DNA of 64,000 bases from the NCBI GenBank assembly GCA_002269645.1, contig NIVC01002434.1, positions 110,080-174,079 of the forward strand, written 5' to 3'. Origin of the DNA: Macrostomum lignano (lineage: Eukaryota). Both the position numbers and the translations under genes were made by a program. The notes under the pieces were generated by a model. That model saw only the letters and a program-made list of their open reading frames with translations. It searched no databases and was not told where the DNA came from. The stretch's first letter is position 1, and each line of letters opens with the position of its first letter. Positions 30,074-63,544 of the stretch are shown here, one piece after another.

Positions 30074-34781
<4,708 letters not shown>

Positions 34782-36679
34782 TGTCCAAGCCGAGTCTGAA
34801 AGGCAGTGTGCATGGCTCATATTTTAGGTTTTTTAACTACGTGTAACTCGTCCTCAACCTCAACAGCATTGAATCCTAAACAGCGCAGAACACATTTCTA
34901 ACCAACAATTACCGCATGATTCTCATTTCAAAAAGGAACGAACCGAGCAGTACAATGCTTGAAACTATCTGAGAAAGGTGCCTCATTAGGCATTTCCGTG
35001 ATCTACAGCTATAGTGCAAAGAGCGTGACGGGGGTGCAACCGGAGTGACGTCCCTAAATCCTTCATCTTTTCTGCTTTTTTTTCAAAGGAGATTAGCTTA
35101 GCTAGTCGAAAATGTCTCTTGCCTGGGCAGTCAGGCCTTGCATAAATGATGAGCAGTTGCTCAAACTGCATCGTATATCACTTTTAAAGCTTCTAGCTCT
35201 CTACTGCTACTGAATCACTCGCCGAATATCTTGCTTTTTCAGCTGGTGTTTTAAATGACAATGTCAGGCAGAAAAAGGATCTTACCTGATCTTACCTCAG
35301 GTAGCTGATTATTCGCAAATATCAGCGAAGACAGAGACAGGAAAAGGCAGAATTTATCGAGCACAGGTTTTGCCAGTCAGTTTTGCTATTGGCAGATGCT
35401 GGCCATGCAGAACCTGAGATCTACCGACCAATTGGAGAAGAGAATAACAAAAATGATTGAGTTTGAGGCAATGCTAGCTGATTTTGCTGTTGAAGAACAT
35501 TTCTAAAGAATCATTTTTTTATAATTCAATAAAATTATTAATCCCGAATTCAGATCCTTGGATTCAGTAGCCATCACAATCCAGTTTAAAATATAGGCAG
35601 AATTTTATGATAAAACGAAAGAAAGAATTTACATTGAATCAGTATAAAAACTTAATCTAAACTAAAGCACAGAGAGCAGTCATCCACTGTAGTAAAAAAG
35701 TCTTTAAAGTGAAAAAGAAATCGGAAAAATTTGAAAAGATTTCAAGCAAAACTGGTGTCACTTCGGTCTCTTGAACTTCCTGTCCTTGGCGCCGACCTCG
35801 CACAGCTGGAGCACTCGGGCCGGCGTCAGCGGCAGCTCGAACGTCAGGTTCACGTCCGGCTTTCCCTGCTGCTTCCGGAAGGCCTCAATCGCTCTCTTGA
35901 TGGCGGTGACGCAGGTGGCCGCCAGACCGAGCGGCGGCTCCCCGATCGCCTTGGTGCTGAACACGCTGTCGGTGTCTCCCGGCTTCTTCAGCAGGTGGAC
36001 GCGGAAGTCGCGCGGCACGTCGGCAGCTTGCGGCGGCTTATAGTTCCAGGTACCGTCGGCCAGGTTTCGCCCGGTGTCGGAGTCGTACACGGTTCTCTCA
36101 GTCAGGTAGTAACCCATGCCGAACACGTAGGCGCCCTCGATCTGGCCAATGTCCACGCCAGGGTTGAGGCTCTTGCCGATGTCCATCGTGATGTCGGACC
36201 GCAGGACGACGTACTCGCCGGTGAGGATGTCCACCTCCACCTCGGCCGCGCCAACGCCGAGGGTAGAGTAGCGAGCGTGCTGGCCTTCACGGTCCTTAGG
36301 ATAGTAGCTGTGAATCGGTTAGGTTTAAGTTAACTTTTTACAATTCTTTAGGTAAATTTTGTCTGTTTCTAATCAAAAAAAAAGTTTTCAGGGATTCGAA
36401 GGAAAAGAGCTGTTTTCACGAGTATTGACTGTCTATTCTGTGACAGTGTCGTACAGTTATAGTTGGTTTTGTATCGACAGCGTCGCAGAACCCTCCCACC
36501 GCTTCTGAGGACGTACTGCTCTGTCTCACATTCATCAGTGCATCTACACCTTTTAGCTGCAGCGCGTTGAAGCAGTCACCTCTGCATGGACTCGCCAGGT
36601 GCACGAACTGCGATATTGAGTCCTATCACCGAGGTCTGTCACGACTAATTAAGACAACACACCTTAATTTGTGGCTTTA

Positions 36680-36817
36680 CCATAGACAGTCTTGTGAAAG
36701 CGATCAAGACACATCTGCTACACCTTTCTGCGTCTTATTTCGATAAAACTGCATTCAATATCGACATCGTATATTCGATATCGGCAGCTAGCGCCTCGTG
36801 CGGCAGACTGTCTATGG
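36680..36817. mobile_element. 138-bp mini-element with 13-bp TIRs ccatagacagtct / agactgtctatgg
   Basis: Perfect 13-bp inverted termini; no TSD recognised. Confidence 0.6.
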
Positions 36818-37092
36818 AAACTGCACTCAATTTCGCCAGCGCCAATCTAAAAGGAAAATAAAGACAGAATAGTGGGATTTCTTAGAGTCTGCACAAGTAC
36901 TGCATTTGGAGTACAGTCCCTACCTCGATTTTTACCATAGAGAGTCCATGCAAGCTGAAAGTCGGCAACCCACCATTTTGCAGCAGCAACCAATTTTCTT
37001 GAATTCATCATTACTGTTCCCTGACCTCTAAGTACGAGCTAATGTACATGTATTTAAATCGAAGCTTTTGCTTTCATACCAATTTCAAAAAA

Positions 37093-37416
37093 GGGCTTGT
37101 AGCCTAGTTTTTAGATCATCGGATTCACGACTTGAAGGTCGGGGGGTTCGATTCCTGATCTAACTGGAACAATTTGTGTCCTTGAGCAAGACACTTAACT
37201 CTGCATTGCTTCAGTTCACCCAGCTGTAAAATGGGTGCCAGCATTAGCTGGGGTAATTGAGGGTGTGTGGCGACCCCCCAGTCCTTGGACTGAACAGCCG
37301 TACGCAGCCTTCAGATGCGCCGCGCAATAGCTGCGGCTGAGCTGTCGGTTGCACATCTGGCCCAATTGGGGCAGGCGTAATCAATTACTATTATAATAAT
37401 AATTATTATTATTATT
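37093..37416 (+). mobile_element. tRNA-derived SINE (family A), copy 1
   Basis: A-box-like tagcctagt, B-box ggttcgattcc, core gtgtccttgagcaagacacttaac...cccagctgtaaaatgggt, and (tta)n tail. A second copy lies at 38688-38978. Confidence 0.8.
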
Positions 37417-38687
37417 AAAATTTCATATCGCGCTTCGCTCCGGTTTTTTATTTTACTTTTAATTGCTCGACTTTGTATTTCATCTGGAAATATATATTAC
37501 GACTCGTTTCGCATGCTTGTTATTGCAAGATTTTCTCTCTTTTTCTCTGACGGGAGGTGACTACAGTGAAAATTGTGTCACTGCTGCTTCTACTGCTAAA
37601 TTTTTGAAGACGTAGCCGGGTTAGGTTGGCAGATGAGCTCTCTGGACTCTCTGGAGCCTCGAAAGTAAGTCGGCCAAAGCTGAAACGCATTATTCGTAAA
37701 AAAATTACTCGCAATTTTTTTGGTTCCGTTTTCTAAACATAATGAATTTGAGATCAAACGCTGAACAGGTGTGGTAATTAAAGCTTTTTGCTTGGTTTTC
37801 ACACATTCTGGATATTTATCTGCTACAGATCTTCTCGAATTTGATGCCCGTGTCTGCATTTTCAAAGCAAGTAATTGGCATATAGGTCCAATTCAATTAC
37901 TCACGTTCCGAAAGCCTTGAGCAGTACGCCCGAGTTGATGGCAGTCGATACCAGCTCAAGCCAATTCGCCTCCGGCTTGGTTAATTTAATTGGCAACAGC
38001 CGCTCTCTGATTTGACTGCCAGCAACCTTCGCGGCCATGGCGTTGAGCTCGCTGGTAGCGCTGCCACCAGTTCCGTCCATCTGCGGCAGCAGCATGCTAT
38101 CTGTCGGTTTGGTCTTCACCATGTCGAGCGCAGCACCAAACTCGGCCAGTTGAGCAACAGCCGCTTGAGCAACTTTCGTGGTCAGACCCTGGCCCATCTC
38201 GGCACCGCAGTGCACAATAGAGATGCTGCCGTCAATGAGCACAGTGACATCTACCTGAGGTATTCCGAACCTCTCGTAGGACACCGGATAGGATATTCCG
38301 GACATGTCTATGCCGCGTTTTCTGTACAAGTTCTCCTATTTTAATTTATTATAAAGGAGGGGTTACAGCTCGTGCTTGAATGAAATAACTATAGCTGAAT
38401 ATACAGCTTTGAGTTAGCTCACCTTATTGAACTGCTCAACACGTTTTCTTCGCTTGTCAATATCAGCTGCAATGCTGAGCTCATCCCACATTCGCGCCAT
38501 GTTGTCGTCGGGCCGTTTTAGACCGGTAAAGTCAGTCTGGACGGAGTTTAAGTAGGTAATTAAAAATGTGTTCTTTAAGATGTGCTCTGTACTGCAATTG
38601 TGACAAGTTGAGACGGCCGTTGACAGTGGATCATGATGGATCACACCTGTTGACAGCGGCTACAGGTAATTTTACACCCAAACATGT

Positions 38688-38978
38688 ACATATAATAATA
38701 ATATTTGAATGTCCCTATGACACCTGCCCCAATGGCCCCGCGCATCTGAATGCTGCGTACGGCTGTTCAGTCCAAGTCCAAGGACTGGGGGGTGGCCACA
38801 CACATCCACTCAATTACCCCAGCTAATGCTGGCACCCATTTTACAGCTGGGTGAACTGAAGCAATGCAGAGTTAAGTGTCTTGCTCAAGGACGCAAATCG
38901 TTCCTAGTAGGTAGAGAATCGAACTCCCGACCTTTCAGTCATGAGTCCGACGCTCTCTGACCACTAGGCTAAACGACG
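38688..38978 (-). mobile_element. tRNA-derived SINE (family A), copy 2, inverted relative to copy 1
   Basis: Reverse complement matches 37093-37416 (e.g. cccagctaatgctggcacccattttacagctgggtgaactgaagcaatgcagagttaagtgtcttgctcaaggac). Confidence 0.8.
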
Positions 38979-39587
38979 CTGCTAAACGATCGATAGTAAA
39001 ACTACGAGCTAAGAATATCATCTTAGAATGCAATCAGAAGTATTGCACCTGACTGACTTACCTGACCGGCACAGTACAGGTTCCTTCTCTTGAACTCAAT
39101 AGGATCCAATTTCAACTCGTGAGCCAGGTGATCCATCATGAGCAGGCTAAATACTGCTGCGGGCGCCGAGCCCGGACATCGCATGGACGTTGTCTGTGGC
39201 TTATTAGTCTTCAAGAACAGCAGATCCCGCTTGTAAGTCGGCGAATAGAACGCCTGATCCAGGGACTGGTCGATTTCGTGTCCCAGAATCACGATAAAGT
39301 TGCACGAACTGCCGGCATCGACAATTGACTGCCAGTGAACGCTCATTAACTGCCCGTCGGCGGATGCTCCAGCTCTGTATTTGGCCATCACAGTCGGTCG
39401 CTTCTGTCCGCATTGAGCCAGCGTGTCCAGGCGCACAAACATGCGACACGGCCGGTGAGTGATGTCGCAAGCGATGGCGCACACAGCAACTGCGTGGTCA
39501 ACCTTGTTGTCGATTAAGATGATGTTTGCAAAAATGTGAGTCCTGCCGAATTAACTCGATTGCTGATAGAAGCTCGTAGTCGCTGGG

Positions 39588-40032
<445 letters not shown>

Positions 40033-41961
40033 TCGTGAACTACACATTTTTGAGCAAAGAACTCACTAAGCTTTTTATCCAAGACTTTTTAAAATGATCA
40101 GTTTGTTCATTAGAAGCAATCAATCAGTAAATATTGATGTACAAACCATGAAAAACTTTCCACCGAAGCCGCCGCCAATTCTCGGACAGATCACTCGAAA
40201 CTGATGCTGCGGTCGACGCATGACTTTGGCCAGCACCGCGGCCACAATCTCTGCCCACTGATGCGGCGCGTTCACTACAAAACCTTCCTCGGTTTGGCGG
40301 ACACTCGCGGTGATCGACTCCATGAAAAAGTGCATCTGCTCACCCACAGAAATCTCACCTTCTACTTGAACCGGCTGTTCGCTTAAGGCAATATCGGGGT
40401 CCAGTTTAGAAACTTTCTGAGTATCGTGAAAGTAAATTGACTTCTTTTTGAATGCTTCTGTTGGGTGCAGAATCGGTTCCGACTTTCCGGGTTCGTATCG
40501 GACAGCCACCAGACTGGCCGCTCGGTCGGCGGCCCACTGCGAGTCAGCCGCAGCCACGGCTATGGGCTGACCGGCGAATGCCACGTCGGACGAAGGAAAA
40601 ATTTCGTCTGTTTGCCTTGGAAATTTTTTTCTGTGTTATAAATGGAAATTACGCACCTGTGCATCTCTGAAGCTATAGTATTACGAGTACTTACGAATCC
40701 TTTGGGAAAATAGGCAAGCTAATATTATTGTTGTATCTTCCTTCCAGGTCACTGACAGACAGTAAGCGCTGATACCCAGGAACATTCTAAAACGGAAAGC
40801 AAGAGATACTTCCAATCAGCTACTAAGGCACATTTGTCGTTGGTCGTAATCTTAGAGACTACTTGGATTGTTAATGTTAAATAACCTCAGCTTCCTCAGT
40901 GTCGAAACCGGTGACCTTGATGGCGGCCTCGGGAGCCAGAACGTAGGCCAAGAACAGCTCATTTGCGTGAGCTGGGTAGTCGTTCACGTAGGTGGCCTCG
41001 CCGGATGTCTGCGCCTTGGACTCGAGCTTCCTGACCGACTGGCCCAGCGGTGCCGGCTGAAGCTCTTCGACAAAGTCCTGCTCGCCCCTCTGGAGAGGCC
41101 GGGTGAGGACGGGACCGCCCGAGCGAGCGGCGCCTTCCACAGCGTCGCTGCCGATGTCCAAGATGGTCTTGTAGAGAAGGTTCACGGCCAGCTGTCGACG
41201 GTGCTCGGGTGAGGAGGCGGTGGCTTCCTCGACCGGCACCACCTCCGACTCGAGCACCTTTAGTGCCGCTGTGAGGATTAAAATGCTTGAGTAAAATAAT
41301 AATCTTATTATCATTGAAAATAATATTGTTTTAAGTTTTCATAAGCTTACACTCCACAACTTCTGAATCCATCAGGCTCTTGTGCAGAAGAAAGTTCTCT
41401 GTCCCCGTGGCTCGATTCTACGACAAAAACGTACACAAAAATTAAGCTGTGAGGCTACTAAAGCTACAGAACTACAGAACCACATGCAGTGCTTACAAAT
41501 TTGTCAGAAATTCCTCCAATAACAATAGTAGGACGCTCAATCACAGTGTAGTCTTTTTTCTTATTAACGGCAAGCTGGAACGCTCCGTTGACGTAGGCAT
41601 GAGCGTTCTGCAAAACGTGGAGAGTGACATTTTATATACTAGAGCAGTGAAAAAGAGCAAGATAATGTTGCACGTGTAACTCACAAGCTGACGCGGCGTG
41701 ATCTTGAACGACCTGTAGAAGTGCTGGTCCGTCGAGATCGCCGGCAGCTTGGCCGACACGATCACCTTCCCGCGCATGTCCAGCCTCAGAAAGTCGGTCA
41801 GCACGTGATCCTGAGTACCCTGCTCATCCGCCACCTTGATCACGGTCTTGGCCGCCTCCAGTGTGATAAACACGTCCGACGGAAAGTCCTGGTGTCGGTG
41901 CTTCATCATGAGGTTTCCAGCCCACGACGCATTCGCGCGAACGGCCTGATTGGCTACCTGC

Positions 41962-43153
41962 CACAGAATATAGACAGAATGCCCGATCGGCTGTCGCGGG
42001 ATGTTTGGAAATTAATATGCAAACAAACTACTTTTGTGGTGAAGCGGAGCATTAGTTATGAAAATTCGATATGCATATATATATTTATAATATATGTTGA
42101 CTCTGCGTATGATTCTATAAACTTAGATACTGCTTCAGAATTTAAAATTAACAGGTTTGGCAGTGCCTAGGCTGATTAATGATTGATTCCAGGCTTTCCT
42201 AGTTCTACTTGAGCCACAGCAACGATATCTGCCCAGTTTGCAGTTTTTCGAGTGCCGCTATAATCAAATTCAATGCAATGCTTATGCAGAGCATTTCGCA
42301 TGTTCTTTAAGCAATGAGGAACATCGATTTAAGCTGGAATCAGTGACTGAACTCCGTCTACTTCGATGCACACGGAAGGGCGATCAGGATTCGCCCCTAA
42401 CTGTCGCAAGCACTGCCACTGAGTAGACTCCTGGTCACACACGATGCCGGAAAGCGTGAGTCCCATTCTGTTAACTGCAGCGGTAAGGTTCTGCTGTTTC
42501 TTTGTACGAGCGTACAGCTGGAGCGTCGGGTATGCCGTGGGCATCAGTCTGACCCCAGGCTCATGTCTCTGGTCAGGACACACGTACATGCTGTCGGGAA
42601 AATGGTGGCTGCACACGACAGCGTTCTTCCACCTCGCTTCGTTTTTCTTGCCCAAGAGGTCTGATCGGAAAATGCGCCGAGCCCAATCTTCACACCTACA
42701 GTAGTTAGGTTTCAGTGAATGACTGTGTGGCAATAGCAGGCAAGTCACGCATGTACATGAACATACCTTTCACGGTTTTCTGGGAAACGATGAAATCTCG
42801 TTTGTGCAGGACATTTGTTTGTGTAATTCTGGCAGCCATAAGCAGCGCATTGCCTTCTTGATGCTGTCATAATGTTAAAGTTGTCTCTGTTAATGCCTTC
42901 GTTGCTGCCAATCACTGCCTTATTAATGTCAGTAGCAGCAGCCGCTGCCACAGAATATACTGTATATTCTATGGCATCGGCTGCTGCTACTCGCAGTCTC
43001 AGTCGTCTATGGCAGAACCTTTCCGAGCCGCATACGAGTAAGTATAAGTGACTACTATCTTTCTTCACCACAAAAGTAGCTAAACATGCAAATACTTTTT
43101 GCGGCAGATTTTTCTGCGAGAGGGCTGATCGGCCATTCTGTCTATATTCTGTG
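41962..43153 (-). mobile_element. Internally deleted P-superfamily DNA transposon encoding a THAP domain
   Basis: 27-bp TIRs CACAGAATATAGACAGAATG(C/G)CCGATC and a perfect 8-bp TSD ctacctgc (41954-41961, 43154-43161). The homologous site in copies 2 and 3 has a single ctacctgc. Spliced ORF 42870-42767 + 42695-42329 gives C2CH THAP (CAAYGC...FHRFP...W...VVCSHHF...LMPTAYPTL) followed by a P-transposase-like segment (GLTLSGIVCDQES). Confidence 0.9.
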
Positions 43154-44912
43154 CTACCTGCTGGTAGTGGTCGCTGATTCTGTCGAGGTGAGCCAGTCCG
43201 GTCACCTTCTCGGCTGCCTCCTTGAATGTGTCGATCAACTCGCGCAGAGTGACGGTAGCACCGATCTCCAGACCCGACTTGCTCAGCTGAACCCAATGCG
43301 AAGTGTTACTTAGCTTGCACTTTGAGCGTACAGTCCATCTGATAAACTCTTGCTGTAACATCTACTACTCACCCTGATGTTGTGCAGCTCTGGAACGTTG
43401 CGAACGTTGATGTAGCAGTTGACGAGCACGTCTTCCTTGAACACTCCGGCAGAAGTGTTTCCGCACACGAGCTGGTACTCATCGTCCTTGTACCGCTTGA
43501 GCAGCTTGAGCAGTTGGTCTAAGCTTCCAGGATTGTAGAAGCGCTGTCCCTTCCAGCCGCGAGCGATTGGGATCACACCGGATGTAGGTGGCTTCGCGAT
43601 GCCTTCAGCGCACAGGCTCTTGTTCATTTCCTGAGCAATGGAGTTGATGTTGTATGTGTAAAGGGGTTGAATGGGATGTTGAAAGGGACTAATGATTGTG
43701 CGCCCGACAACATGCATGTAGGTGTAAACCTCAGACTCACCTCGATGTCCACGCAATCACCGTTGTTCGAGTCGCACGCGAACGACTTCATGCCGTCGAG
43801 AATGGACCGATAGCCTGTGCAGCGACAAATGTTTCCATCGAAGAAGTGCTCGACCTGCTGCATCGTCGGCTTCGGGTTCTCCTGCAGCTGGCTGTACATG
43901 CTCATGACGAATCCGGGAGAGCAGAAGCCGCACTGGGTTCCATAGTGCTCGGCGAGTCTCTCTTGGATCGGGTGGTACGGCTTGCCGCTGCCTCCGATGC
44001 CCTCGATGGTGGTGACATGCCAGCCTACTGCCGAGTACACCGGACACAGGCACTGCAAACGATCACACGAGTCGCGTCATGACCCCAGAGCTGACGTATT
44101 CAACTTCATCCTTAGTAGGTCGTAATCACGAAGCAAAAGGTGACTCACCGAGTTGACAGGCACTGACACGACCTCTTCTGTAGCCGGGTGCTTGTAGGTG
44201 GCCGTGACAACGCAGCATCCGCACCCGCCTTCTCTACACATAACTTTGGTGCCCTTGAGGTTGAGCACATCGCGAAGGAAGTCGTTCAGGCTGGTCTCAG
44301 GGTTGCAGTCTCTGGGAACTACATTAAACGTTTGGGAAGAAATTGATCAAAAGTGCCAATTAATGAAGAAAAGTCAAGAAAGAATGCTTATCTCGCTTAC
44401 TATCGATGGGTTTTCCATTGACCCACACTGCTGGGTCTCTGATGGACGACGAGACGTCACTCATAGTCGGTCGGTTTGCAGATCAATACAATTTCTGTCG
44501 TTTTTTTCTATCGAACGACGGCTCTCCCACAGTCACTTCAGCTACTGTTTTAAATAGCCTACTTCAGCGAGAAAGTGTGCTTAGCTTATTTGGTATTGCT
44601 GCTTTTAGCCAATTAAGGCAAGTCAGATCTTTACTATCTTTTGAAGTACTTGGCAAAGGAAATGGAACGGCTTTTTTAGATTGGAGCCGGTCAGTATGTT
44701 TTCAAACTCTATTGCACGTGCCTCGCTATGTCAGCAGTTTATAGCTTGCTGAATGCTAACACTTGCGTTAGAAATTGATCTCTTAATGATAAGAGAACCG
44801 AAGATAGCTTTGAGATACATGTAGAACTGAGAAGCTCGTGTGTTTTGAACTACATTTCATAGCCACTCTCCTCTGACTGACAACAAGCATTTTGAAACGA
44901 TTTCTTTTAATA

Positions 44913-45839: not shown

Positions 45840-46182
45840 TAATTGTCTATGGCCGAAACAGGACTTCCAGTTATTGACCAGCCATTAAGCAAAGGTCATT
45901 ACCGTGATGTAAAATTTCGATCAGTGGCTTACAAGGCCGATAGTGTGTAGCTGATAAATACGTTTCGGCCATAGACCATCCACAGAAAAGCAAATGCTTT
46001 TATTCCTGCATCCATGCCAAAAAAATTGGCTAGACTATAATCTGTTCTTCTGATTTATACCCCTTTTGGCCGCTCCAAATAAATGGCTCCGCCAATAGGA
46101 AAGCAAGAATCATTTATCTGGCCCGAGCCAAATAAACGATCCAAATAAATTAGACGCCCGAATAACGATTTTTTAAATTTTA

Positions 46183-46728: not shown

Positions 46729-46819
46729 GAATGTGGGGGCTTCGCCCCCACACCCCCAGCAAGCAATCTGCCCCCTCATCCTCGCTAGCAGCCAACATAC
46801 CGAACGGGGTATAAATATA

Positions 46820-47739: not shown

Positions 47740-48150
47740 TATTATTTCTGTTTATTTAGTCTATGGTCTGAATTAATGGCAGAGGACTCGTTTCTTGGCC
47801 GAGGCAAAGAAATAAATAAACAGAAATAACTTATACTTCTATACTAAAAATATGCCTAAACACTGATGCTAATAGCGATTTAAAAGTTGAGTACACTTCA
47901 TATATAGTCATTTCTATTAAATTAAAATATTGCATAAAGAATCGAGTCGTCTCCAGGGTTGCAGATTGGTTTATTAAGTGAGTGATTTATTAACTGTCGA
48001 CCTAACAAAGGTTTGATAAAAAATCATTCTTCATAAATATATTAAGCTCGGACCAGGCGTAACATAGTTCAATCAAAGAATATAAACTGTAATCATTATG
48101 ATTTTTTTACTCAAACTGCCCCAAAAATTTACTCAGATAAAGTAGGGCTT

Positions 48151-51100
48151 TTACTTGAACATCTTAAACTGCCTGTCCTTGGCGCCGACCTCGCACAGCT
48201 GGAGCACCCGGGCCGGCGTCAGCGGCAGCTCAAACGTCAGGTTCACGTCCGGCTTTCCCTGCTGCTTCCGGAAGGCCTCAATCGCTCTCTTAATGGCGGT
48301 GACGCAGGTGGCCGCCAGACCGAGCGGCGGCTCCCCGATCGCCTTGGTGCTGAACACGCTGTCGGTGTCTCCCGGCTTCTTCAGCAGGTGGACGCGGAAG
48401 TCGCGCGGCACGTCGGCAGCCTGCGGCGGCTTATAGTTCCAGGTACCGTCGGCCAGGTTTCGCCCGGTGTCGGAGTCGTACACGGTTCTCTCAGTCAGGT
48501 AGTAACCCATGCCGAACACGTAGGCGCCCTCGATCTGGCCAATGTCCACGCCAGGGTTGAGGCTCTTGCCGATGTCCATCATGATGTCGGAGCGCAGGAC
48601 GACGTACTCGCCGGTGAGGATGTCCACCTCCACCTCTGCCGCGCCAACGCCGAGGGTAGAGTAGCGAGCGTGCTTGTTTTCCCGGTTCTGTGAGACGTAT
48701 CTGTGTATTAATGTATGTTTAGGCAAAAATAGATGCTCAGGTAATATTGTTGTCTTAAACACGAGCCACTGTTTCATTCTGCCTAACTGAGTTTGCAAGG
48801 TATTTTCTTTTTAAGAACCAAAGTTAACAACTCTTTTCAAAGTTAACCAACTTCAAGTGATTTAAACCTGTAAACTTGTGAAATTTCGTGCGCGAGGTGC
48901 AAACAAAGTTATATTCAGTTCAAGTGGCACCTGTTTAGGATCCACCCCATGTACTATAAACGATATTTAAGTGTTATAGTACGCTCGTACATTGAAAAAA
49001 TTTCTTAACTGAAGTTTCTTACGTTCCAAACGCCTTGAGCAAGACTCCCGACATAATAGCGGTCATTACTAGCTCATTCCAACCGGCATCTGGCTTATTC
49101 TCTTTGATTGGCAGCAAGCGCTCTCTGATTTGCTCGGCAGCAACCTTCGCGGCCATTGCGTTGAGCTCGCTGGTAGCGCTGCCACCAGTTCCGTCCATCT
49201 GCGGCAGCAGCATGCTATCTGTCGGTTTGGTCTTCACCATGTCGAGCGTAGCGCCAAACTCGGCCAGTTGAGCTACAGCCGCTTGAGCAACTTTCGTAGT
49301 CAGACCCTGGCCCATCTCTGAACCGCTGTGCACAATAGAGATGCTGCCGTCTATGTGCACTGTCATGTCCACTTCCGATGGGCCAAATCTGGCGTAGCTG
49401 ATGTGGTACGAGATTGCAGACATGTCGAGTCCTCTCTTCTTGTAGTGGTTTTCCTAAAAGTATGATATAGGTTACCGAGTATTCATTTTTCATTTTTAAT
49501 TTTTTATTCAGAAATATGACTTTGCAAAGTCGAAAGAATTAATATCATTGGTAACAATCACACCTTATTGAACTTCTCGATTGCACTTCGACGCTTCTCA
49601 ATATCGGCCTCTTTGTAAAGGTCGTCCCACATCCGCCCCAGGTTATTGTCAGCTCGCTCCATTCCGTGCTGGTCGACCTATAGTGATTGTTCGCGTGTAT
49701 TTTTTACTGACTAAACGTCATATTATTGTTTTGAAGCGAGCATCAAAATTACAAACCTGGCCAGCACGATAAAGATTCTTCCTTTTAAACTCAATCGGGT
49801 CCACCCTGAGCTCATGGGCCATATGGTCCATCATGAGCAGATTAAGCATAGCGGCTGGAGCGGATCCGGGCGCCCTGACGGCAGTAGCCTGCGGCTTGTT
49901 TGACTTCATGTAGGTTAGGTCCCGTTTAAATGTGTCAGCGTGATACGCCTGGTCCAGCGAATCGTCCATCTCGCGGCCAATCAGCGTGATGAAGTTGCAC
50001 GCGTATCCAGCTTCAACAGCCGAGTCCCAGTGAACGCTTCGGAGAAAGCCATCAGTGTCAGCTCCGGCCTTGTACTTAGCAACAATGGTCGGTCGCTTCT
50101 GTCCGCTGAGTGCAAAGGTGTCCAGGCGTAGGTACATCCGGCAGGGACGATGCGTGATGTCGCATGCAATCGCGCACACCGCAATCACGTGATCTACCTG
50201 CAATTCGGCCCCGAATTTCAGAGATGCTCAGAGAGAGATAGGGGCGTAGCGTGGAGCTTAGCTGGCCCTTTTAGGCTTGTAAATCGTGGTACCGGCGCTT
50301 AGCTTACGTCAAGCGGCCTCCCCCCAAAAAATGGGGCCCAAATATACGTGAAAAAACTTGCACCCACAATTAACCCTGTGACTACTTGCTTAGGCCCGAT
50401 TAAAAAACAACTGCATAGTAACTAGTGAATCTACCAGTTACCAGCTACCAGTTACCAGCTACCAGCTACCAGCTACCAGTTAGCAGCTACCAGCTACCAG
50501 CTACCGGCTATCAGCTACCAGTTAGCAGCTACCAGTTACCAGCTACCGGCTACCATCTACCGGCTACCATCTACCGGCTACCAGCTACCAGCTACCAGCT
50601 ACCGGCTATCAGCTACCAGTTAGCAGCTACCAGTTACCAGCTACCAGCTACCGGCTACCAGCTACCGGCTACCAGCTACCAGCTACATTGTACCAGTGAT
50701 TACTTATCAGTCTGAGAAAAGCCAGTCCCCTAGACGTGTTCTGATTGGTCGAGAAACCCTTTAAACAGCCGTCAAAACTAAACGGATTTGGTAGACTTTG
50801 ATTTGCTTCCTTGATAGATTCACAAAAATTCCAAATAAAGAAGGTTGCGGCCTACTTGTTATTTATGAAATCGGATTTTGAAGGACTGGTAAAAATCAGT
50901 AGTAGCTCCATCTATTTGATGCAAGATTATGAATGCAGCAACTACTTGACAGTTGACACTGCTGAATATACGTCTGTAAGACGGTATTTCTGAAGTCACA
51001 TGAGTCACATGAGAAGAGAGAGAGATGAAGAACCCATGAGTAGGCACTAAGTGAAGAATTTTGAGGCTTGTTATGTTAAATCTCTTATCTATCTTAAGAC

Positions 51101-54100
51101 TGCCTATCAGATTCAAATAGGATTCGACATTCTGATTGATGTATTGTTTCATTACCATAAACATTTTTCCACCAAATCCGCCGCCGATTCGCGGACTAAT
51201 TGCCCGGATTTGATTCCTAGGCCTGCGAAGCACCTTAGAGAGCATCACGGTGACGCCCTCGATCCACTGGTGCGGCGCCTGAACTAGGAAGCCCTCCTCC
51301 GTGCGGCGCACGCTGGCGGTCAGCGACTCGATGAAGAAGTGAATCTGCTCGCCGACCGTCACTTCGCCTTCAACGCGAACTGGCTGCTTGGCCAGGGTGG
51401 CATCGGCGTCCTCCTTGGAAGCCCGCTGAGCATCCTTGAAGTGGATCGATTTCTTAGCCAAAGCCTCCGTGATGTGCACAATTGGCTCCTCGTCTCCGGC
51501 GTCGAATTTCACGTCGACAAGACTGGCTGCTCGGTCGGCGGCCCACTGGGTCTCGGCGAGGACCACGGACACGGGCTGGCCAGCGAAGCCGACAAGCTTA
51601 GATGGAAAGATCTCGTCCGTCTGCCTAAAAGTTGTCGCGACTTTCTTAGTCATTTCTTAGATCATCTGCACTTTTTCTCTGTTTACTCAGTTTTCTCTCC
51701 CTCTGTCTAGTTCAATCTTGTTATTCTTATCTCTCTCTCCCTTGCTGCCTTCTGATTGGCTCTTCAATATCGTCTCTTTCCTTAGTCGCGCACTCCACCC
51801 CTTCTTGTTTTATATTGCACTCAACCCCCCCCCGCCCGACTTTATTGCCATATATAACGTTATACCCGTTGCGGCCCTGAGCCCCTCTGTCTGTCTCTCT
51901 GTTTTGTTTTCAACTCTAATTGAATACTCTTAGTTTATTGATAATTCTTTACAAAAAAGGCAATTCAATTTCGTAGCTCATTGGCCAATCCAAGCGGGCA
52001 AGTAGAAGAGAGAAGATTATGGACTCTTTTGGAAATTTGAGAAGGCAGTTGAACATTAATCCTCATCCACCGACCGTTAATGAATTGCGGTTTTTCATGT
52101 ACATCTCAAAGGCATGACTCTCCGTTTTCATGGCAACGTAACTGACTGTACGAGGCGTTATACAATAACACTTTGCTTTGTGTATGGTTCAAGCATATCG
52201 ATCAGAGAATAAAATTCAATGAACACTTTTCGTGACTCAGTGGACCTTCTCGAAATTATTCGCTGCTTCATCTCAGAGTCTGAAGATTTGTTCTTCACAA
52301 GTTGCTTACCTTAACCGATATGTCTTATTGATTGCTTTGATTTGTAGCGACAGATTGATAATTTATTTCCTGATATCGTTCGTTCAGACGTACGTGTAGA
52401 CTTAATACGACCTACAGAAGATACGCTCGTAATTGTGACGATACAAGGAACTCACATTTCTGGCGGGAAGATTGGCATCGTAGTGTTATTGGTGTACTTT
52501 CCCTCCAAGTCCTTCAAACTTAGCATGCTGTGGTATCCAGGGACTTTCTGAAGTGGTTAACTTTTGCATTAAAGTACATAAGTCTGGTTGACAAGCAAAA
52601 TTCAATATCAAACTATCGCACCTCTGCTTCCTCAGTATCGAAACCAATGACCTTGATGGCGGCCTCGGGAGCCAGAACGTAGGCCAAGAACAGCTCATTC
52701 GCGTGAGCTGGGTAGTCGTTCACGTAGGTGGCCTCGCCGGATGTCTGCGCCTTGGACTCGAGCTTCCTGACCGACTGGCCCAGCGGTGCCGGCTGAAGCT
52801 CTTCGACAAAGTCCTGCTCGCCCCTCTGGAGAGGCCGGGTGAGGACGGGACCGCCCGAGCGAGCGGCGCCTTCCACAGCGTCGCTGCCGATGTCCAAGAT
52901 GGTCTTGTAGAGAAGGTTCACGGCCAGCTGTCGACGGTGCTCGGGTGAGGAGGCGGTGGCTTCCTCGACCGGCACCACCTCCGACTCGAGCACCTTCAAT
53001 GCGGCTGAAAAATATTTTCAGATGTGTCGGAGAATGTTTTAACTCTTCACTGTATCAAAACAAAACATAAGTACCTATATGAGCATTGATAATAAAGGCG
53101 ACTCACACTGAACAACTTCTTCATCTAGCAGACTCTTGTTCAGAAGAAAGTTCTCCGTCTTGATGGCATGATTCTGTTGATTTAATTTAAGAGGAAACGT
53201 TTGACTTTCTGAATTTTTGTATTGAATTTAATTTTACAGTGCAACCGCTAGACGCCAAAACGAACTTACAAACTTATCAGATATTCCTCCAATCAGAATG
53301 TTCGGTCGTTCAGTCACTCTATAATTTTGCCTTTTGTCCACGGCAAATTGAAATGCGCCGTTTACGTAGGCATGGGCGTTCTAGAAAAATTTGCATACTC
53401 GCGTTAAAAACTGTATTACTAGCAGTAGGCAAAGAAGCAAAATCTTACTCTTTGACTTTCAAAAAAGGACAGCAATTCAATTCTAGTGCCCTAAGCAGTC
53501 AATAGTAAGCTATCAGTCTTGAGTAGGGGTGTTCGGGTTTCAATTTTTTCTAAGCTCTAACCCCGAACCCCGAACCCGACCTGAAATCCGAACCGACCCC
53601 GAACCCCGAATACCCCTAGTCTTGAGAACTAAAGGCCTACTGGCTGAAAAAAACGATAACGATCAATTCGAAAAACTATAATGGCGAGTTACGACACTTT
53701 TATCTTCACTGTAATCTTAACGCTGAAGCAACGCAGTGTCAACGTTGTAAAGCCACTCTTTAGAACTAAGATCATTCAGTTCTGTAATAGAAACGATTTT
53801 CAGACTACTAAGAATAGCAAAATAACAAAATGCTAAAAATACAACTCACGAGCTGACGCGGCGTGATCTTGAACGACCTGTAGAAGTGCTGGTCCGTTGA
53901 GATCGCCGGCAGCTTGGCCGACACGATCACCTTCCCGCGCATGTCCAGCCTCAGAAAGTCGGTCAGCACGTGATCCTGAGTACCCTGCTCATCCGCCACC
54001 TTGATCACGGTCTTTGCCGCCTCCAGTGTGATGAACACGTCCGACGGAAAGTCCTGGTGTCGGTGCTTCATCATGAGGTTTCCGGCCCACGACGCATTCG

Positions 54101-55630
54101 CGCGAACGGCCTGATTGGCTACCTGCTGGTAGTGGTCGCTGATTCTGTCGAGGTGAGCCAGTCTGGGAACCTTCTCGGCTGCCTCCTTGAATGTGTCGAT
54201 CAACTCGCGCAGAGTGACGGTAGCACCGATCTCCAGACCCGACTTGCTCAGCTGAAAGCAAAGCAAAGATTTATTCAGATTGCGAACATACAATCCAACT
54301 GATAAACTCTTGCTGTAACATCTACCACTCACCCTGATGTTGTGCAGCTCTGGAACGTTGCGAACGTTGATGTAGCAGTTGACGAGCACGTCTTCCTTGA
54401 ACACTCCGGCAGAAGTGTTTCCGCACACGAGCTGGTACTCATCGTCCTTGTACCGCTTGAGCAGCTTGAGCAGTTGGTCTAAGCTTCCAGGATTGTAGAA
54501 GCGCTGTCCCTTCCAGCCGCGAGCGATCGGAATCACACCGGATGTAGGTGGTTTCGCGATGCCTTCAGCGCACAGGCTCTTGTTCATTTCCTGAACAATG
54601 GAGTTGATGTTGTATGTGTAAAGGGGGTTGAATGGGATGTTGAAAGGTACTACTGATTGTGCGCCAGATAACATAGGTGTAAACCTCAGACTCACCTCGA
54701 TGTCCACGCAACCACCGTTGTTCGAGTCGCACGCAAACGACTTCATGCCGTCGAGAATGGACCGATAGCCTGTGCAGCGACAAATGTTTCCGTCGAAGAA
54801 GTGCTCGACCTGCTGCATCGTCGGCTTCGGGTTCTCCTGCAGCTGGCTGTACATGCTCATGACGAATCCGGGAGAGCAGAAGCCGCACTGGGTTCCATAG
54901 TGCTCGGCGAGTCTCTCTTGGATCGGGTGGTACGGCTTGCCGCTGCCTCCGATGCCCTCGATGGTGGTGACGTGCCAGCCTACTGCCGAGTACACCGGAC
55001 ACAAGCACTGCAAACGATCACACGAGTCGCGTCATGACCTCAGAGCTGACGTATTCAACTTCATCCTTAGTAGGTCGTAATCACGAAGCAAAAGGTGACT
55101 CACCGAGTTGACAGGCACTGACACGACCTCTTCTGTAGCCGGGTGCTTGTAGGTGGCCGTGACAACGCAGCATCCGCACCCGCCTTCTCTACACATAACT
55201 TTGGTGCCCTTGAGGTTGAGCACATCGCGAAGGAAGTCGTTCAGGCTGGTCTCAGGGTTGCAGTCTCTGGGAACTATGAATTAAAGTTGGCTCTGTAGCT
55301 AAAGACAGCATGGATTATATTCAATTATCTCAGCCACTCCCCGGATATTATAAACTGAGGTGGATACGTTGACAGGTATTTCATAGTCAGATAGTGTCAT
55401 TACTTTGCGCCTGCTGAGATGAGACCAAGTGACGTCTCGAAAACGTGTCAGACACTCGCACCAATTCGCATGTCCGTAATTATTCTCATCTTTCCATCGC
55501 TAGTAGTGCTTAGGCTTAAGTTTGTTAGAAACAAATAAAACTTTAGTGAAATATACTTACTCTCAAGCGCTTTACCATTCACATGAATGCTTGGCTCCCC
55601 GCTGGATGGAGCTATCCCTCCTGAGTACAT
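48151..55630 (-). CDS. Aldehyde oxidase-like molybdo-flavoenzyme, copy 2 (apparently intact, 14 exons)
   Basis: Starts MYSGGIAPSSGEPSIHVNGK (55630-55561). Further exons ~55273-55104, 55007-54696, 54590-54333, 54251-53850, then nine more to the stop at 48151; junction phases checked by eye. All 2Fe-2S, FAD and Moco motifs present, including catalytic Glu in KAIGEPP. Confidence 0.88.
50432..50690. repeat. 7-bp-based minisatellite (ccagcta / ccagtta / ccggcta)
   Basis: Direct observation. Confidence 0.92.
53524..53618. mobile_element. 95-bp hAT-type MITE
   Basis: TIRs TAGGGGTGTTCGGG / CCCGAATACCCCTA and a perfect 8-bp TSD gtcttgag (53516-53523, 53619-53626); intron 5 of AOX copy 2. Confidence 0.9.
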
Positions 55631-56820: not shown

Positions 56821-59800
56821 TTACTCAGAATGTTCAAATTTCCTGTCCTTGGTGCCGACCTCGCACAGCTGGAGCACCCGGGCCGGCGTCAGCGGCAGCT
56901 CAAACGTCAGGTTCACGTCCGGCTTTCCCTGCTGCTTCCGGAAGGCCTCAATCGCTCTCTTGATGGCGGTGACGCAGGTGGCCGCCAAACCGAGCGGCGG
57001 CTCCCCGATCGCCTTGGTGCTGAACACGCTGTCGGTGTCTCCCGGCTTCTTCAGCAGGTGGACGCGGAAGTCGCGCGGCACGTCGGCAGCCTGCGGCGGC
57101 TTATAGTTCCAGGTACCGTCGGCCAGGTTTCGCCCGGTGTCGGAGTCGTACACGGTTCTCTCGGTCAGGTAGTAACCCATGCCGAACACGTAGGCGCCCT
57201 CGATCTGGCCAATGTCCACGCCAGGGTTGAGGCTCTTGCCGATGTCCATCGTGATGTCCGAGCGCAGGACGACGTACTCGCCGGTGAGGATGTCCACCTC
57301 CACCTCTGCCGCGCCAACGCCGAGGGTAGAGTAGCGAGCGTGCTGGGATTTACGATTTTGGCTGGCGTAGCTGAATGTTCGAGAACGTGTTGTAAATTAT
57401 TTATAATCTTTGTAAATCCAGTCACAGGTGACGAATTAGGAGCTAATGAATGGACTACTTACCTGCCGAAAGCTTTGAGCAAGACTCCAGACATGATTGC
57501 CGCGACAACCAGTTCATTCCAACCGGCATCTGGCTTATTCTCTTTGATCGGCAACAAGCGCTCTTTGATTTGATCAGCGGCAGCTTTGGCTGCCATGGCG
57601 TTGAGCTCGCTAGTAGCGCTGCCGCCGGTTGCGTCCATCTGTGGCAGCATCATAGTGTCGGTCGGTTTGGCCTTCACCATGTCGAGTGTGGCGCCAAACT
57701 CGGCCAGCTGAGCAACAGCCGCTTGAGCAACTTTCGTTGTCAGACCCTGGCCCATTTCCGTGCCGCTATGTACAATGGAGATGCTGCCGTCCATGTGCAC
57801 CGTAAGATCGACCTCGGATATGCCAACGCGAGCATAACTGATCGGGTAGGAAATAGCGGACATGTCCAGCCCCCGTTTTTTGTACGCGTTAGCCTGGAAA
57901 CACGGTGGGGGATTAAATGATGTATACTTAAATTAGGTAGCTCATGAACTTTGCTTAAACTTGAATATGACTTTGCAGTTAACAATCACACTTTTTCTTT
58001 ACCAGATTGAAGGTGTCGATGTCTTTTCTACGCTGGTCTATCTCAGCGGCAATGTACAACTCGTCCCACATTCGCACCAGATTGTCTTTTGTTCGTTCCA
58101 TGCCATTCTGGTCCAACTTGAATTGGATTGGTTTAAATATTCCAAATTAAAGAAAGGACTAACATCTCTTAGCGCTCATGATTTTTGCTTTGAAAATTGA
58201 TAAATATGTCTATTACCTGTCCGTCTCTATACAAATTCTTTCGTTTGAAGTCGATAGGATCAATTTTTAGCTTATAAGCCATGTGGTCCATCATGAGTAG
58301 GTTGAACAGCGCGGCTGGACCGGCTCCCGGAGCTCGAACTGATGTGCTCTGTGGCTTATTCGTTTTTAGGTAAGTCAGATTCCTCTTGAACGTTGGCGAG
58401 TAGTACGCTTGATCCATTGAGTCATCCATCTCTCGGCCAATTATGGTGACAACATTACAGACGTAGCCCGCGTCCAAATAAGAGTCCCAATGGACGCTCT
58501 TTAGCTGACCATCCTCTGTAGCGCCAGCTTTGTACTTTGCGATCACGGTTGGACGCTTCTGGCTGTACTGGGCCAGAGAATCAAGGCGAAGAAACATGCG
58601 ACAGGGTCGGCGGGTAATATCGCACGCGATAGTGCAGAGAGCAGTAGCGTGATCTATCTGTAATGCGCGGAGTATAAAATGCCGATGTGTATAGCTTTGT
58701 GACTCAATACTTCAACGAAATGCAAATATTAAGCATAAAAATCGGTGACTGCCAACCATAAAAATTTTTCCACCGAATCCGCCGCCCAAACGGGGACAGA
58801 CCACTCGAAAATGGTTCCTTGGTCTGCCCATCACCTTGGCGAGCACCATAGAGGAAACTTCTGGCCACTGGTGCGGCGCATACACCAAAAAGCCTTCCTC
58901 TGTTTGGCGAACGCTGGTAGTCACTGACTCCATGAAAAAGTGCAGCTGCTCACCGACCACAAACTCTCCTTCAATCTGCACCGACTGCTTTGCCAACTCA
59001 GCGTCAGGGTCTTCTTTCGAGGCTCTTTGTGCATCCTGGAAGAACATAGATTGCTTAGCCAAAGCCTCCGTGATGTGCACAATTGGCTCATCATCTCCGG
59101 CATCGAAGTTCACTTCGACCAGACTGGCTGCCCGGTCGGCGGCCCACTGGGTCTCGGCGAGGACCGCGGCAACGGGTTGACCAGCAAAACCAACAGCTTT
59201 GGATGGGAAGATCTCGTCCGTCTGCCTAAAGACACCAATTTTATTCAGGGGCATGCATAGATTTCTTCTTATACTTTGTAGAAATCCTTTCACGTGCGTT
59301 TAGGAATATACCAGATTACTAGTACGAGCTACTTACGGTACACGAAGAAATAAGCAAATGTTGTCAAAACTTACGCCTCGGGAGGAAGAATGGGAAGAGT
59401 GCAGTTGTTGGTGTATTTTCCCTCTAAGTCCTTGACTGTAAGGATGCTGTGGAAACCGGGCACTCTCTATAAAAAATTTTTTTAATTCAATAAACTAGGC
59501 ATCGTAGTCTAGGGCAAAGCAGATCTATTTTCTAAAAAAGTGACAAACATGCATAATATATGTACCTCAGCTTCCTCAGTGTCGAAACCTGTGACCTTGA
59601 TGGCGGCCTCGGGAGCCAGAACGTAGGCCAAGAACAGCTCATTCGCGTGAGCTGGGTAGTCGTTCACGTAGGTGGCCTCGCCGGATGTCTGCGCCTTGGA
59701 CTCGAGCTTCCTGACCGACTGGCCCAGCGGTGCCGGCTGAAGCTCTTCGACAAAGTCCTGCTCGCCCCTCTGGAGAGGCCGGGTGAGGACGGGACCGCCC

Positions 59801-61980
59801 GAGCGAGCGGCACCTTCCACAGCGTCGCTGCCGATGTCCAAGATGGTCTTGTAGAGAAGGTTCACGGCCAGCTGTCGACGGTGCTCGGGTGAGGAGGCGG
59901 TGGCTTCCTCAACCGGCACCACCTCCGACTCGAGCACCTTCAGCGCGGCTGAAAGTTTTTGAGTGTCGGTTAAGTGACTGTCAAGTTTTCAAGCGATTCT
60001 TAAGTCCAAAAATTATTTTAACAACACAACCCTTCGTTTAAAACTCACATTCGACAACCTCTTCATCCAGAAGGCTCTTGTTCAGCAGAAAGTTTTCTGT
60101 CTTCGTGGCTCGATTCTACAACAGACAAGGTTACATGTCAACTACTTTGTTGCTTCTGTTTCGCTACTATAAGTTTAGAATCAGCTGCAGTGCTTACAAA
60201 TTTGTCAGAAATTCCACCAATAACAATGGTTGGACGCTCAAGCACAGTGTAGTCCTTTTTCTTGTCAACAGCAAGCTCAAAGGCTCCGTTAACGTAGGCA
60301 TGAGCGTTCTGCAAGAGAAACATGTGGGTATTTCAATGTAGCAAAGTATTATTGGTTGTACATAGTGTTGTGTCAGAAATCATGATTGACTTTTAGCTCA
60401 CGAGCTGACGCGGCGTGATCTTGAACGACCTGTAGAAGTGCTTGTCCGTCGAGATAGCCGGCAGCTTGGCCGACACGATCACCTTCCCGCGCATGTCCAG
60501 CCTCAGAAAGTCGGTCAGCACGTGATCCTGAGTACCCTGCTCATCCGCCACCTTGATCACGGTCTTTGCCGCCTCCAGTGTGATGAACACGTCCGACGGA
60601 AAGTCCTGGTGTCGGTGCTTCATCATGAGGTTTCCGGCCCACGACGCATTCGCGCGAACGGCCTGATTGGCTACCTGCTGGTAGTGGTCGCTGATTCTGT
60701 CGAGGTGAGCCAGTCCGGGAACCTTCTCGGCTGCCTCCTTGAATGTGTCGATCAACTCGCGCAGAGTGACGGTAGCACCGATCTCCAGACCCGACTTGCT
60801 CAGCTGAAAGCAATGCAAAGAGTTATTCAGATTGCGAACATACAATCCAACTGATAAACTCTTGCTGTAACATCTACCACTCACCCTGATGTTGTGCAGC
60901 TCTGGAACGTTGCGAACGTTGATGTAGCAGTTAACGAGCACGTCTTCCTTGAACACTCCGGCAGAAGTGTTTCCGCACACGAGCTGGTACTCATCGTCCT
61001 TGTACCGCTTGAGCAGCTTGAGCAGTTGGTCTAAGCTTCCAGGATTGTAGAAGCGCTGTCCCTTCCAGCCGCGAGCGATCGGAATCACACCGGATGTAGG
61101 TGGCTTCGCGATGCCTTCAGCGCACAGGCTCTTGTTCATTTCCTGAACAATGGAGTTGATGTTGCATGTGTAAAGGGGGTTGAATGGGATGTTGAAAGGT
61201 ACTACTGATTGTGCGCCAGATAGCATAGGTGTAAACCTCAGACTCACCTCGATGTCCACGCAACCACCGTTGTTCGAGTCGCACGCAAACGACTTCATGC
61301 CGTCGAGAATGGACCGATAGCCTGTGCAGCGACAAATGTTTCCGTCGAAGAAGTGCTCGACCTGCTGCATCGTCGGCTTCGGGTTCTCCTGCAGCTGGCT
61401 GTACATGCTCATGACGAATCCGGGAGAGCAGAAGCCGCACTGGGTTCCATAGTGCTCGGCGAGTCTCTCTTGGATCGGGTGGTACGGCTTGCCGCTGCCT
61501 CCGATGCCCTCGATGGTGGTAACGTGCCAGCCTACTGCCGAGTACACCGGACACAAGCACTGCAAACGATCACAAGAGTCGCGTCATGACCTCAGAGCTG
61601 ACGTATTCAATTCATCCTTAGTAGGTCGTAATCACGAAGCAAAAGGTGACTCACCGAGTTGACAGGCACTGACACGACCTCTTCTGTAGCCGGGTGCTTG
61701 TAGGTGGCCGTGACAACGCAGCATCCGCACCCGCCTTCTCTACACATAACTTTGGTGCCCTTGAGGTTGAGCATATCGCGAAGAAGTCATTGAGACTGGT
61801 CTCAGGGTTGCAGTCCTTGGGAACTGTTTAAGTTTATAGGGATGCACTATTTTATTTGTGTGTTAATACGCTCGTAAGCACAAAGAGCAATATTATTAGA
61901 CTTGATTTACCATTTGTGGCTCTTCCGTTAACGAAAATCACGGGATCACCGCTGGAAGGCACAATGCCGCTCGAATACAT
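56821..61980 (-). pseudogene. Aldehyde oxidase-like gene, copy 3; 1-nt deletion in exon 2
   Basis: Starts MYSSGIVPSSGDPVIFVNGR (61980-61911) with the same 14-exon layout. At ~61783 it reads cgcgaagaagtc vs cgcgaaggaagtc in copies 1 and 2, a frameshift leading to a stop early in exon 3. All other exons appear open. Could be a sequencing error. Confidence 0.75.
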
Positions 61981-63506: not shown

Positions 63507-63544
63507 CTGAAATAAACAAATAGAGATTAAGTCAACGGAGTAAC

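Follow-up and report, generated by a model that had tools for sequence, protein, structure and literature searches.

Introduction

Animal AOX clusters arise by tandem duplication, as exemplified by AOX1-4 of Drosophila and AOX1/3/4 of vertebrates. The locus described here is a tandem array of three AOX-like genes of the flatworm Macrostomum lignano, located in a stretch of 64,000 nucleotides (nt) that was analysed at its full length and is referred to below as the window (contig NIVC01002434.1, positions 110,080 to 174,079 of the forward strand). Along these genes, nearly identical segments alternate with strongly diverged ones, and the closest described parallels come from studies of interlocus gene conversion (IGC). 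In Arabidopsis halleri, three tandem copies of HMA4 show mosaic IGC (bioRxiv 10.1101/2025.10.29.685298), and in the GOT1 paralogs of Tigriopus californicus islands of high divergence persist despite ongoing conversion, with possible functional divergence (PMC3728101). Surveys in Caenorhabditis and Drosophila revealed that conversion is favoured by identity and proximity, homogenises paralogs and raises within-locus variation (PMC3966223, PMC3924832). In literature searches, concerted evolution by domain was not found described for AOX clusters, nor did anything directly relevant to gene conversion emerge for AOX genes or for M. lignano.

An original prediction, made from the letters of the window alone, had viewed the three genes as old paralogs undergoing patchy gene conversion, which would keep a shared electron-transfer chassis while the substrate pocket at the molybdenum (Mo) centre diversifies, like a cassette-type detoxification array.

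Results

Structure of the AOX-like array

The three AOX-like genes, designated c1, c2 and c3, lie head to tail on the minus strand and have 14 exons (E1-E14) apiece; the gene segments given below are all on this strand. Gene models were rebuilt from open frames, three-way comparison of the copies and GT-AG sites, and the exon lengths of E2-E14 are equal across the copies. Copy c1 (35758..44464) runs from an ATG at 44464 to a stop at 35758-35760 with GT-AG at all introns, and its translation comprises 1287 amino acids (aa) after removal of an insertion in E5. Copy c2 (48151..55630) is an intact gene of 1289 aa, whose model is that of the annotated BOX15_Mlig026772g1 (PAA57910.1): the gene at 8371-15850 of locus L003 (contig NIVC01002434.1, assembly Mlig_3_7, GenBank GCA_002269645.1), which is 100% identical to window 38151-64000, corresponds exactly to 55630-48151. 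Copy c3 (56821..61980) also has 14 exons, with a 1-nt deletion in E2 that breaks the frame as assembled. The outer limits originally predicted for the array, 35758 and 61980, proved exact, being the c1 stop and the c3 ATG. The contig ends where the window ends, and no fourth tandem copy was found within the window or upstream in the homeologous locus L002 (see below), where a Lig_chan gene is present instead.

Automatic annotation of the locus has produced fused or truncated gene models. The UniRef models P0001, P0002 and P0123 (1345, 1389 and 3478 aa) are fused across adjacent copies and skip exons. Their origin may lie in read-through or in polycistronic precursor transcripts, reportedly common in this flatworm (PMC5730564), or in prediction errors to which the repeated modules gave rise. 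An open reading frame (ORF) of 99 aa between c1 and c2 (46307-46606, minus strand) had no Pfam match and is part of P0001, which spans c2 into c1. Exon 10 of c3, searched alone, gave no homolog at E<=1e-10, yet its exact sequence lies inside P0002, which we ascribe to a limit of the word index; the full-length c2 query did retrieve homologs.

Near-identical and diverged segments

Comparison of the copies revealed two classes of exons. Nucleotide identity between copies was 96-100% in E2, 98-99.7% in E3, 98.8-99.2% in E4, 98-99% in E5 and 97.9-98.2% in E8, while E14 reached 94-95% as a whole and 98.4-99.0% in a core of 491 nt. The other class (E6, E7 and E9-E13) spans 57-89% overall, with 72-89% in E6, 78-82% in E7, 58-69% in E9, 67-77% in E10, 66-68% in E11, 63-68% in E12 and 76-81% in E13. 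Introns I2-I4, situated between the near-identical exons E2-E5, are themselves 83-99% identical, whereas the alignment of I1, I5 and I7-I13 was no better than that of shuffled sequence (z<3); I6 was alignable for c1-c3 only (z=13.5). These values agree with the original prediction, which had placed near-identity in exons 2-5 with their introns, exon 8 and the last exon (96-100% measured for E2-E5, E8 and the E14 core) and strong divergence in exons 6, 7 and 9-13, and had counted about 39 differences in about 156 aa between exons 10 of c2 and c3 (75% identity measured). It had also called the introns beside exon 8 and the last exon unalignable, which holds for I7, I8 and I13, but has to be corrected further upstream, where I6 aligns between c1 and c3. 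Intron 10 carries copy-specific expansions, with ~109 copies of (AGAC)n in c1 (39588-40030) and a 14-nt minisatellite in c2 (50387-50751), and such repeats help explain the long, unalignable introns.

The same partition was observed at silent sites. The number of synonymous substitutions per synonymous site (dS, Nei-Gojobori) was strongly non-uniform among exons, being 0-0.14 in the homogenised exons versus 0.4 to saturated in the others. Four-fold degenerate sites differed at 12-21 of ~343 positions (3.5-6%) in the homogenised exons as compared to 107-119 of ~197 (55-59%) elsewhere (Fisher P 1e-37 to 1e-49), a roughly ten- to seventeen-fold contrast with sharp, exon-tied edges; constraint alone is therefore insufficient as its cause. 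Silent-site and intron identity are thus heterogeneous along the gene beyond chance, as concerted evolution requires. Since the Mo-domain exons E9-E12 are close to saturation at silent sites, c1-c3 are old duplicates.

The homogenised segments form three blocks. Block A comprises E2-E5 with I2-I4, which encode the 2Fe-2S domains and FAD_binding_5, and runs from within 3 nt of the E2 acceptor to 5-7 nt into I5. It occupies 41685..44318 in c1, including a transposon at 41958-43157, 53850..55273 in c2 and 60402..61823 in c3. The c2 block is 98.6% identical to that of c3 across 1431 nt, introns included, and the c1 block is 96.3% and 98.2% identical to that of c2 on either side of the insertion. 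The first 51 nt of block A in c3 are diverged from both c1 and c2; the switch of identity, predicted near 61775, was located at E2 position 51 of this copy, at about window position 61773. Block B (40886..41268 in c1, 52622..53004 in c2, 59566..59948 in c3) is the 383-nt exon 8, 97.9-98.2% identical between copies, plus 2-3 nt on either side, and its flanking introns are unalignable. The mean distance of the 11 variable sites of E8 to the closer exon border is 30 nt versus 96 nt expected (P=1e-5), and the inner 340 nt of this exon show only 1-3 mismatches per pair. Block C (35791..36281 in c1, 48184..48674 in c2, 56854..57344 in c3) is the core of exon 14 (positions 27-517), which holds the catalytic Glu motif AIGEPP, with 5-8 mismatches per 491 nt between copies. 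At the margins of E14, the first 26 nt differ by 46-50% and the last 30 nt by 23-37%, and the core ends ~30 nt before the stop.

The diverged region E9-E13 encodes the hammerhead, MoCoBD_1 and the first part of MoCoBD_2. In c1 (37905..40786), its nucleotide identity to the other copies was 57-81%, with dS from 0.67 to saturated and a nonsynonymous rate (dN) of 0.12-0.38; the corresponding regions of c2 (49023..52547) and c3 (57463..59466) were compared exon by exon. Older partial tracts were found among the diverged exons. The middle of exon 13 (positions 91-315; 38021..38245 in c1, 49139-49363 in c2) has 11 mismatches per 225 nt between c1 and c2 versus 31-33 with c3, as the original prediction had noted in describing this part as common to c1 and c2. 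Over E6-I6-E7 (41351..41607 in c1, 60049-60308 in c3), c1 is nearer to c3 than to c2, with 89% identity in E6 as compared to 72-73% with c2, and in the first 180 nt of E10 the closest pair is c2-c3. Different pairs are thus closest in different diverged segments, which indicates many events of different ages. In a Sawyer-style run test, tracts were detected in E13 for c1-c2 (12 concordant variable sites, permutation P=0.0002) and in E10 and E13 for c2-c3 (P=0.0002).

The family-wide conservation of the exons was also compared. Relative to sequences from other phyla and to distant paralogs of M. lignano (overall identity 53-55%), E4, E5 and E8 (22-60% amino acid identity to these distant relatives) were no more conserved than E6, E7, E10 and E13, while E3, with the second 2Fe-2S domain, and E14 were among the more conserved parts of the family.

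Comparison with a second array and a dispersed paralog

A second colinear array (locus L002, contig NIVC01002762.1, Mlig_3_7) contains c3', c2' and most of c1', and shows the same mosaic. It is ~97% identical to the window with ~2% substitutions, which fits the divergence reported among the three subgenomes of the M. lignano neopolyploid (PMC10733133). In block A, 18 differences separate c2 from c3 and six separate c2' from c3', versus 22 between c2 and c2' and 31 between c3 and c3'. Quartet analysis gave 18 sites grouping c2 with c3 and c2' with c3', versus four for orthology. Array-private indels common to c2 and c3 were present in I4 (16 nt) and I3 (1 nt), and three sites of block A are array-private in all three paralogs. 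This within-array grouping of c2 and c3 demonstrates post-split concerted evolution: once the arrays had separated, block A was exchanged between the two copies in each of them independently. The array-private variants of c2 and c3, together with the near-saturated silent sites of E9-E12, bear out the view of old paralogs subject to patchy conversion.

For c1, and for E8 and E14 of all copies, the closest relatives are the homeologs and not the paralogs, and these blocks were therefore homogenised before the array split. Pooled per-exon counts showed that the homogenised exons exceed the diverged ones in between-array divergence by a factor of ~1.3-2.5, which varies with the copy, as expected if conversion imports paralog variants. 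A dispersed fourth paralog, c4, found alone on contig NIVC01001790.1, carries the same mosaic: its identity is 93% across block A with the introns counted, 95.6% for E14 and 68-73% for E10-E11. Independent UniRef gene models of M. lignano have the same gene order and amino acid variants common across paralogs.

Protein family and active-site residues

Pfam analysis of c2 revealed Fer2, Fer2_2, FAD_binding_5, CO_deh_flav_C, Ald_Xan_dh_C, MoCoBD_1 and MoCoBD_2 in this order, each above the gathering score. The best PDB match over the full length was Drosophila AOX1 (7px0), with E=1e-75 in the N-terminal and 2e-108 in the C-terminal half. The eight Cys ligands of the two 2Fe-2S clusters, read from the translations, are present and identical in c1, c2 and c3, with C-x4-C-x2-C...C in 'MCREGGCGCC...NSCLC' for the first cluster and C-x2-C...C-x-C in 'TQCGFCSPG...NICRCTGY' for the second, and their positions align with the ligand positions of Drosophila AOX1. 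The catalytic Glu (Glu1261 in bovine XDH numbering) is kept in exon 14 of all three copies ('TKAIGEPPLGL' versus 'SKAVGEPPLFL' in rat). In the alignment to rat XDH, the position of Glu802 is occupied by Phe in c1, Met in c2, Ile in c3 and Leu in the fourth paralog, and that of Arg880 aligns with Glu, so that the array proteins do not have the pocket pair Glu802 and Arg880 by which xanthine-specific XDH is recognised. Two further pocket positions of rat XDH also vary across the four paralogs: position 1010 is E/A/A/D and position 1014 is I/P/I/V.

Because Glu802 and Arg880 are lacking, the array proteins are predicted to be AOX-type enzymes and not XDH proper, and the label 'AOX-like' is judged correct at the sequence level. 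In the array proteins, the substrate would be oxidised at the Mo cofactor, with the catalytic Glu of E14, and electrons would pass via the two 2Fe-2S clusters to the flavin (FAD). The closest matches outside Macrostomum are only ~40% identical, and this flatworm AOX clade is lineage-specific. In a distant AOX paralog (P0004; locus L001, contig NIVC01001033.1, gene 10001-21855) the exon structure is partly different, with the E10 equivalent fused to part of the E11 equivalent and the E14 equivalent split in two; intron positions have therefore shifted within the AOX family.

Lesions and the transposon of c1

Exon 5 of c1 is interrupted by an insertion of 1200 nt (41958..43157, minus strand), consisting of a 1191-nt element and a 9-bp target-site duplication, GCAGGTAGC. 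The element has 37-nt terminal inverted repeats (ACAGAATATAGACAGAATG...) and an ORF with a THAP domain, and neither c2, c3 nor the homeologous c1' contains it. A palindrome inside it (42931-42991) repeats the terminal motif, and two elements may be present. The insertion with its duplication offers the sites CAG/GTAGCA ... tattctgtggCAG/GTAGCC, whose use in splicing would excise the insert exactly and restore the frame ...YQQ/VANQ...; the putative donor, GTAGCA, matches the standard consensus poorly. The insertion is thus a possible candidate for a newly born transposon-derived intron.

The frameshift of c3 is a 1-nt deletion in E2 (61782..61783, minus strand; GACTT-CTTCGC), absent from c3'. 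Rescue via a private in-frame ATG shortly after the frameshift (GATATG versus GATGTG, G-to-A) was considered and not adopted, as the product would be without the first ferredoxin-fold strands. In the second array, c1' has a 1-nt deletion in E14 (~27369 of L002), and c3' has a 1-nt deletion in E4 (near 4547) and an 8-nt insertion in E12 (7583-7590). Copies c2 and c2' are the sole intact copies and the sole full-length annotated genes of the two arrays. The single-base indels do not lie in long homopolymers and could still be consensus errors, which is unlikely for the 8-nt insertion and the transposon. The lesions of c1 and c3 may represent early pseudogenisation after polyploidy, or consensus errors.

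Surroundings of the array

The region between c1 and c2 (44465-48150) contains two Tc1/mariner-like remnants with DDE_3 matches. The first has an ORF at 45110-45664 and 46-nt inverted repeats at 44911/45796; the ORF of the second (47017-47433) lies inside 138-nt, 96% identical inverted repeats at 46817/47605. On the other side of c1, window 820-34500 contains a great abundance of mini- and microsatellite arrays that show a strong strand skew, including a 13-nt unit in ~260 copies (17673-20996), 21-nt units (13950-15045 and 32483-33240), a 45-nt unit (26996-28092), (CTA)n (30378-30719) and (TAAC)n (34140-34500, and again at 63541-64000). This richness agrees with the reported 15% tandem-repeat content of the genome. 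The neighbouring genes are a rhodopsin-family receptor with seven transmembrane segments (1684-3383, plus strand; 7tm_1, E=2e-22) and exons of a WD40 beta-propeller protein with an EF-hand pair (8972-16682, minus strand).

Discussion

The results argue strongly that old tandem AOX-type paralogs exchange sequence by IGC and that they do so only where homology suffices for recombination, which we regard as very probable. The mechanism that we infer is similarity-dependent conversion. Long constrained exons (258-550 nt) would remain within the convertible range, and the short introns I2-I4, enclosed by long exons, would be copied along in the tracts. Short exons (E1, E6, E7, E9 and E12; 64-114 nt) would be unable to anchor tracts, and would diverge and act as barriers, as would long introns rich in indels, satellites or transposons. 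The expected consequence is that blocks stop at exon borders and that their outermost nucleotides erode. Simulations of HMA4 showed that divergence-dependent conversion combined with purifying selection yields an exon/intron mosaic of this kind (bioRxiv 10.1101/2025.10.29.685298).

Several points weigh against this interpretation. A homology threshold alone leaves the escape of E10, E11 and E13 (431-469 nt) unexplained, for which either selection against swaps of pocket residues, or chance drift beyond the similarity threshold, may have been responsible. The run test detects only the small E10/E13 tracts and is powerless where all three copies are co-homogenised; those blocks were assessed instead by silent-site heterogeneity tests and by quartet analysis with the second array. 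The higher GC content at third codon positions of the homogenised exons (0.80 versus 0.58-0.64 in the diverged exons) is weakly specific, as an unconverted distant paralog (L001) gave 0.755 versus 0.713 for the same exon classes, and GC-biased conversion was downgraded as its explanation after this control. E8 and E14 are without post-split conversion, and 'ongoing' therefore applies to block A only. Finally, base-level errors may be present in Mlig_3_7, a PacBio-based assembly whose source is a neopolyploid having three subgenomes (PMC5730564, PMC10733133).

The alternative that fares best is the one originally predicted, a modular mosaic shaped by selection, in which conversion would be tolerated or favoured in the redox scaffold and purged from the Mo-pocket exons of enzymes with different substrates. 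We consider it possible but rather doubtful. In its favour, E9-E13 contain MoCoBD_1 and most of MoCoBD_2, the pocket positions 802, 1010 and 1014 vary among paralogs, E10, E11 and E13 are long enough for conversion and yet were entered by short, old tracts only, and the dispersed fourth paralog has the same partition. The proposed division between electron-transfer chassis and substrate pocket stands in part: E2-E5 do correspond to the two 2Fe-2S domains and FAD_binding_5. E14, E8 and E6-E7, however, do not fit it. Pfam mapping places the last third of the Mo-cofactor domain, including AIGEPP, in E14, and the CO_deh_flav_C tail, a linker and the start of the hammerhead in E8. The homogenised set thus includes a Mo-domain exon with the catalytic Glu and a weakly constrained linker, while the flavoprotein C-terminal domain (CO_deh_flav_C) exons E6-E7 lie outside it; since E14 is homogenised, homogenised does not equal electron transfer. 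The mosaic matches exon length and homology islands no less well than it matches function. Judged from the residues, diversification of the substrate pocket is plausible; positive selection was not detected in the diverged exons, where dN/dS lies well under 1 and dS has reached saturation. The frame-disrupting lesions of c1 and c3 in both arrays fit redundancy better than specialised enzymes, and the idea of a cassette-type detoxification array is weakened because c1/c3 and c1'/c3' carry lesions and only c2 and c2' are intact.

A stronger, adaptive form of this partition appears improbable. It would have one interchangeable redox scaffold (the 2Fe-2S, FAD and linker segments and the C-terminal Mo segment) shared by at least four paralogs and three subgenomes, with conversion blocked only in the pocket exons. 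If it were true, new Mo-pocket variants would always be tried on the same optimised scaffold, and subunits of different paralogs might even pair. The evidence gives it no advantage over a neutral process governed by a homology threshold.

The formation of hybrid genes through a small number of unequal crossovers, or of partial segmental duplications, is a much less likely source of the mosaic. Unequal crossing-over does occur in tandem arrays, but each pair of copies alternates between high and low identity six times or more and the closest pair varies by segment, for which single crossovers are insufficient, and copy number and exon lengths are unaltered. A variant of this explanation, repair templated by spliced cDNA, would predict edges at or near exon borders, as observed for E8 and E14; the edges of block C, however, lie 26 and ~30 nt inside E14, away from the splice site. 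For block A, cDNA-templated conversion was rejected, as introns are present and homogenised there.

Slightly less credible still is that collapse of the assembly, or polishing cross-talk between paralogs, made the near-identical blocks. The assembly is PacBio-based, the neopolyploid genome is repeat-rich with many scaffolds reported as chimeric between subgenomes, and several coding exons contain 1-nt indels. On the other hand, the mosaic repeats in the second array, in the dispersed paralog and in gene models of other source, and paralog-specific fixed differences are retained inside the blocks of both arrays. Cross-talk among six copies would not give variants that are array-private to c2 and c3, among them a 16-nt indel, and the blocks (0.4-1.4 kb) are far below PacBio read length with unique flanking anchors. 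An artefact of this kind is thus unlikely as the cause. Purifying selection alone, maintaining exon identity with no exchange, can be set aside with near certainty: E3 and E14 are indeed relatively conserved in the family, but four-fold sites and I2-I4 are near-identical too, E4, E5 and E8 match distant relatives no better than the diverged exons do, and paralogs of one array cluster against their homeologs.

IGC between old paralogs, limited by homology, places the array next to the systems introduced above. As in HMA4 of A. halleri, there are three tandem paralogs, the rate of conversion varies along the gene, and coding sequence is homogenised while long introns are diverged. HMA4 is young and similar overall, whereas the unconverted AOX exons are saturated at silent sites, so that the contrast is far stronger; moreover, two of the three AOX copies look damaged and a dispersed fourth copy takes part. 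The array shares with GOT1 of T. californicus the islands of divergence under conversion and converted copies that are not all kept functional; GOT1 belongs to another enzyme family and was studied with population data, whereas the evidence for AOX comes from two homeologous arrays of one assembly. Like the AOX clusters of Drosophila and vertebrates, the array consists of seven-domain molybdo-flavoenzymes that expanded in tandem and lost Glu802 and Arg880, but the flatworm AOX clade is lineage-specific. In line with the surveys of Caenorhabditis and Drosophila, the converted AOX exons show higher between-array divergence; those surveys mostly concern young duplicates, and the present case concerns one old family in which the tracts have sharp bounds.

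Blocks A-C will confound read mapping, variant calling, the design of RNA interference and CRISPR experiments, and orthology calls for these AOX genes. For the same family, the homeologous arrays of a neopolyploid flatworm provide an internal clock, and the locus is a useful test case for models of divergence-dependent conversion and for IGC-aware phylogenetics. Set beside the known systems, the AOX array is a very clean example of conversion and divergence coexisting in one gene family; it involves no new mechanism and is an unusually sharp case of the well-documented process of mosaic concerted evolution.

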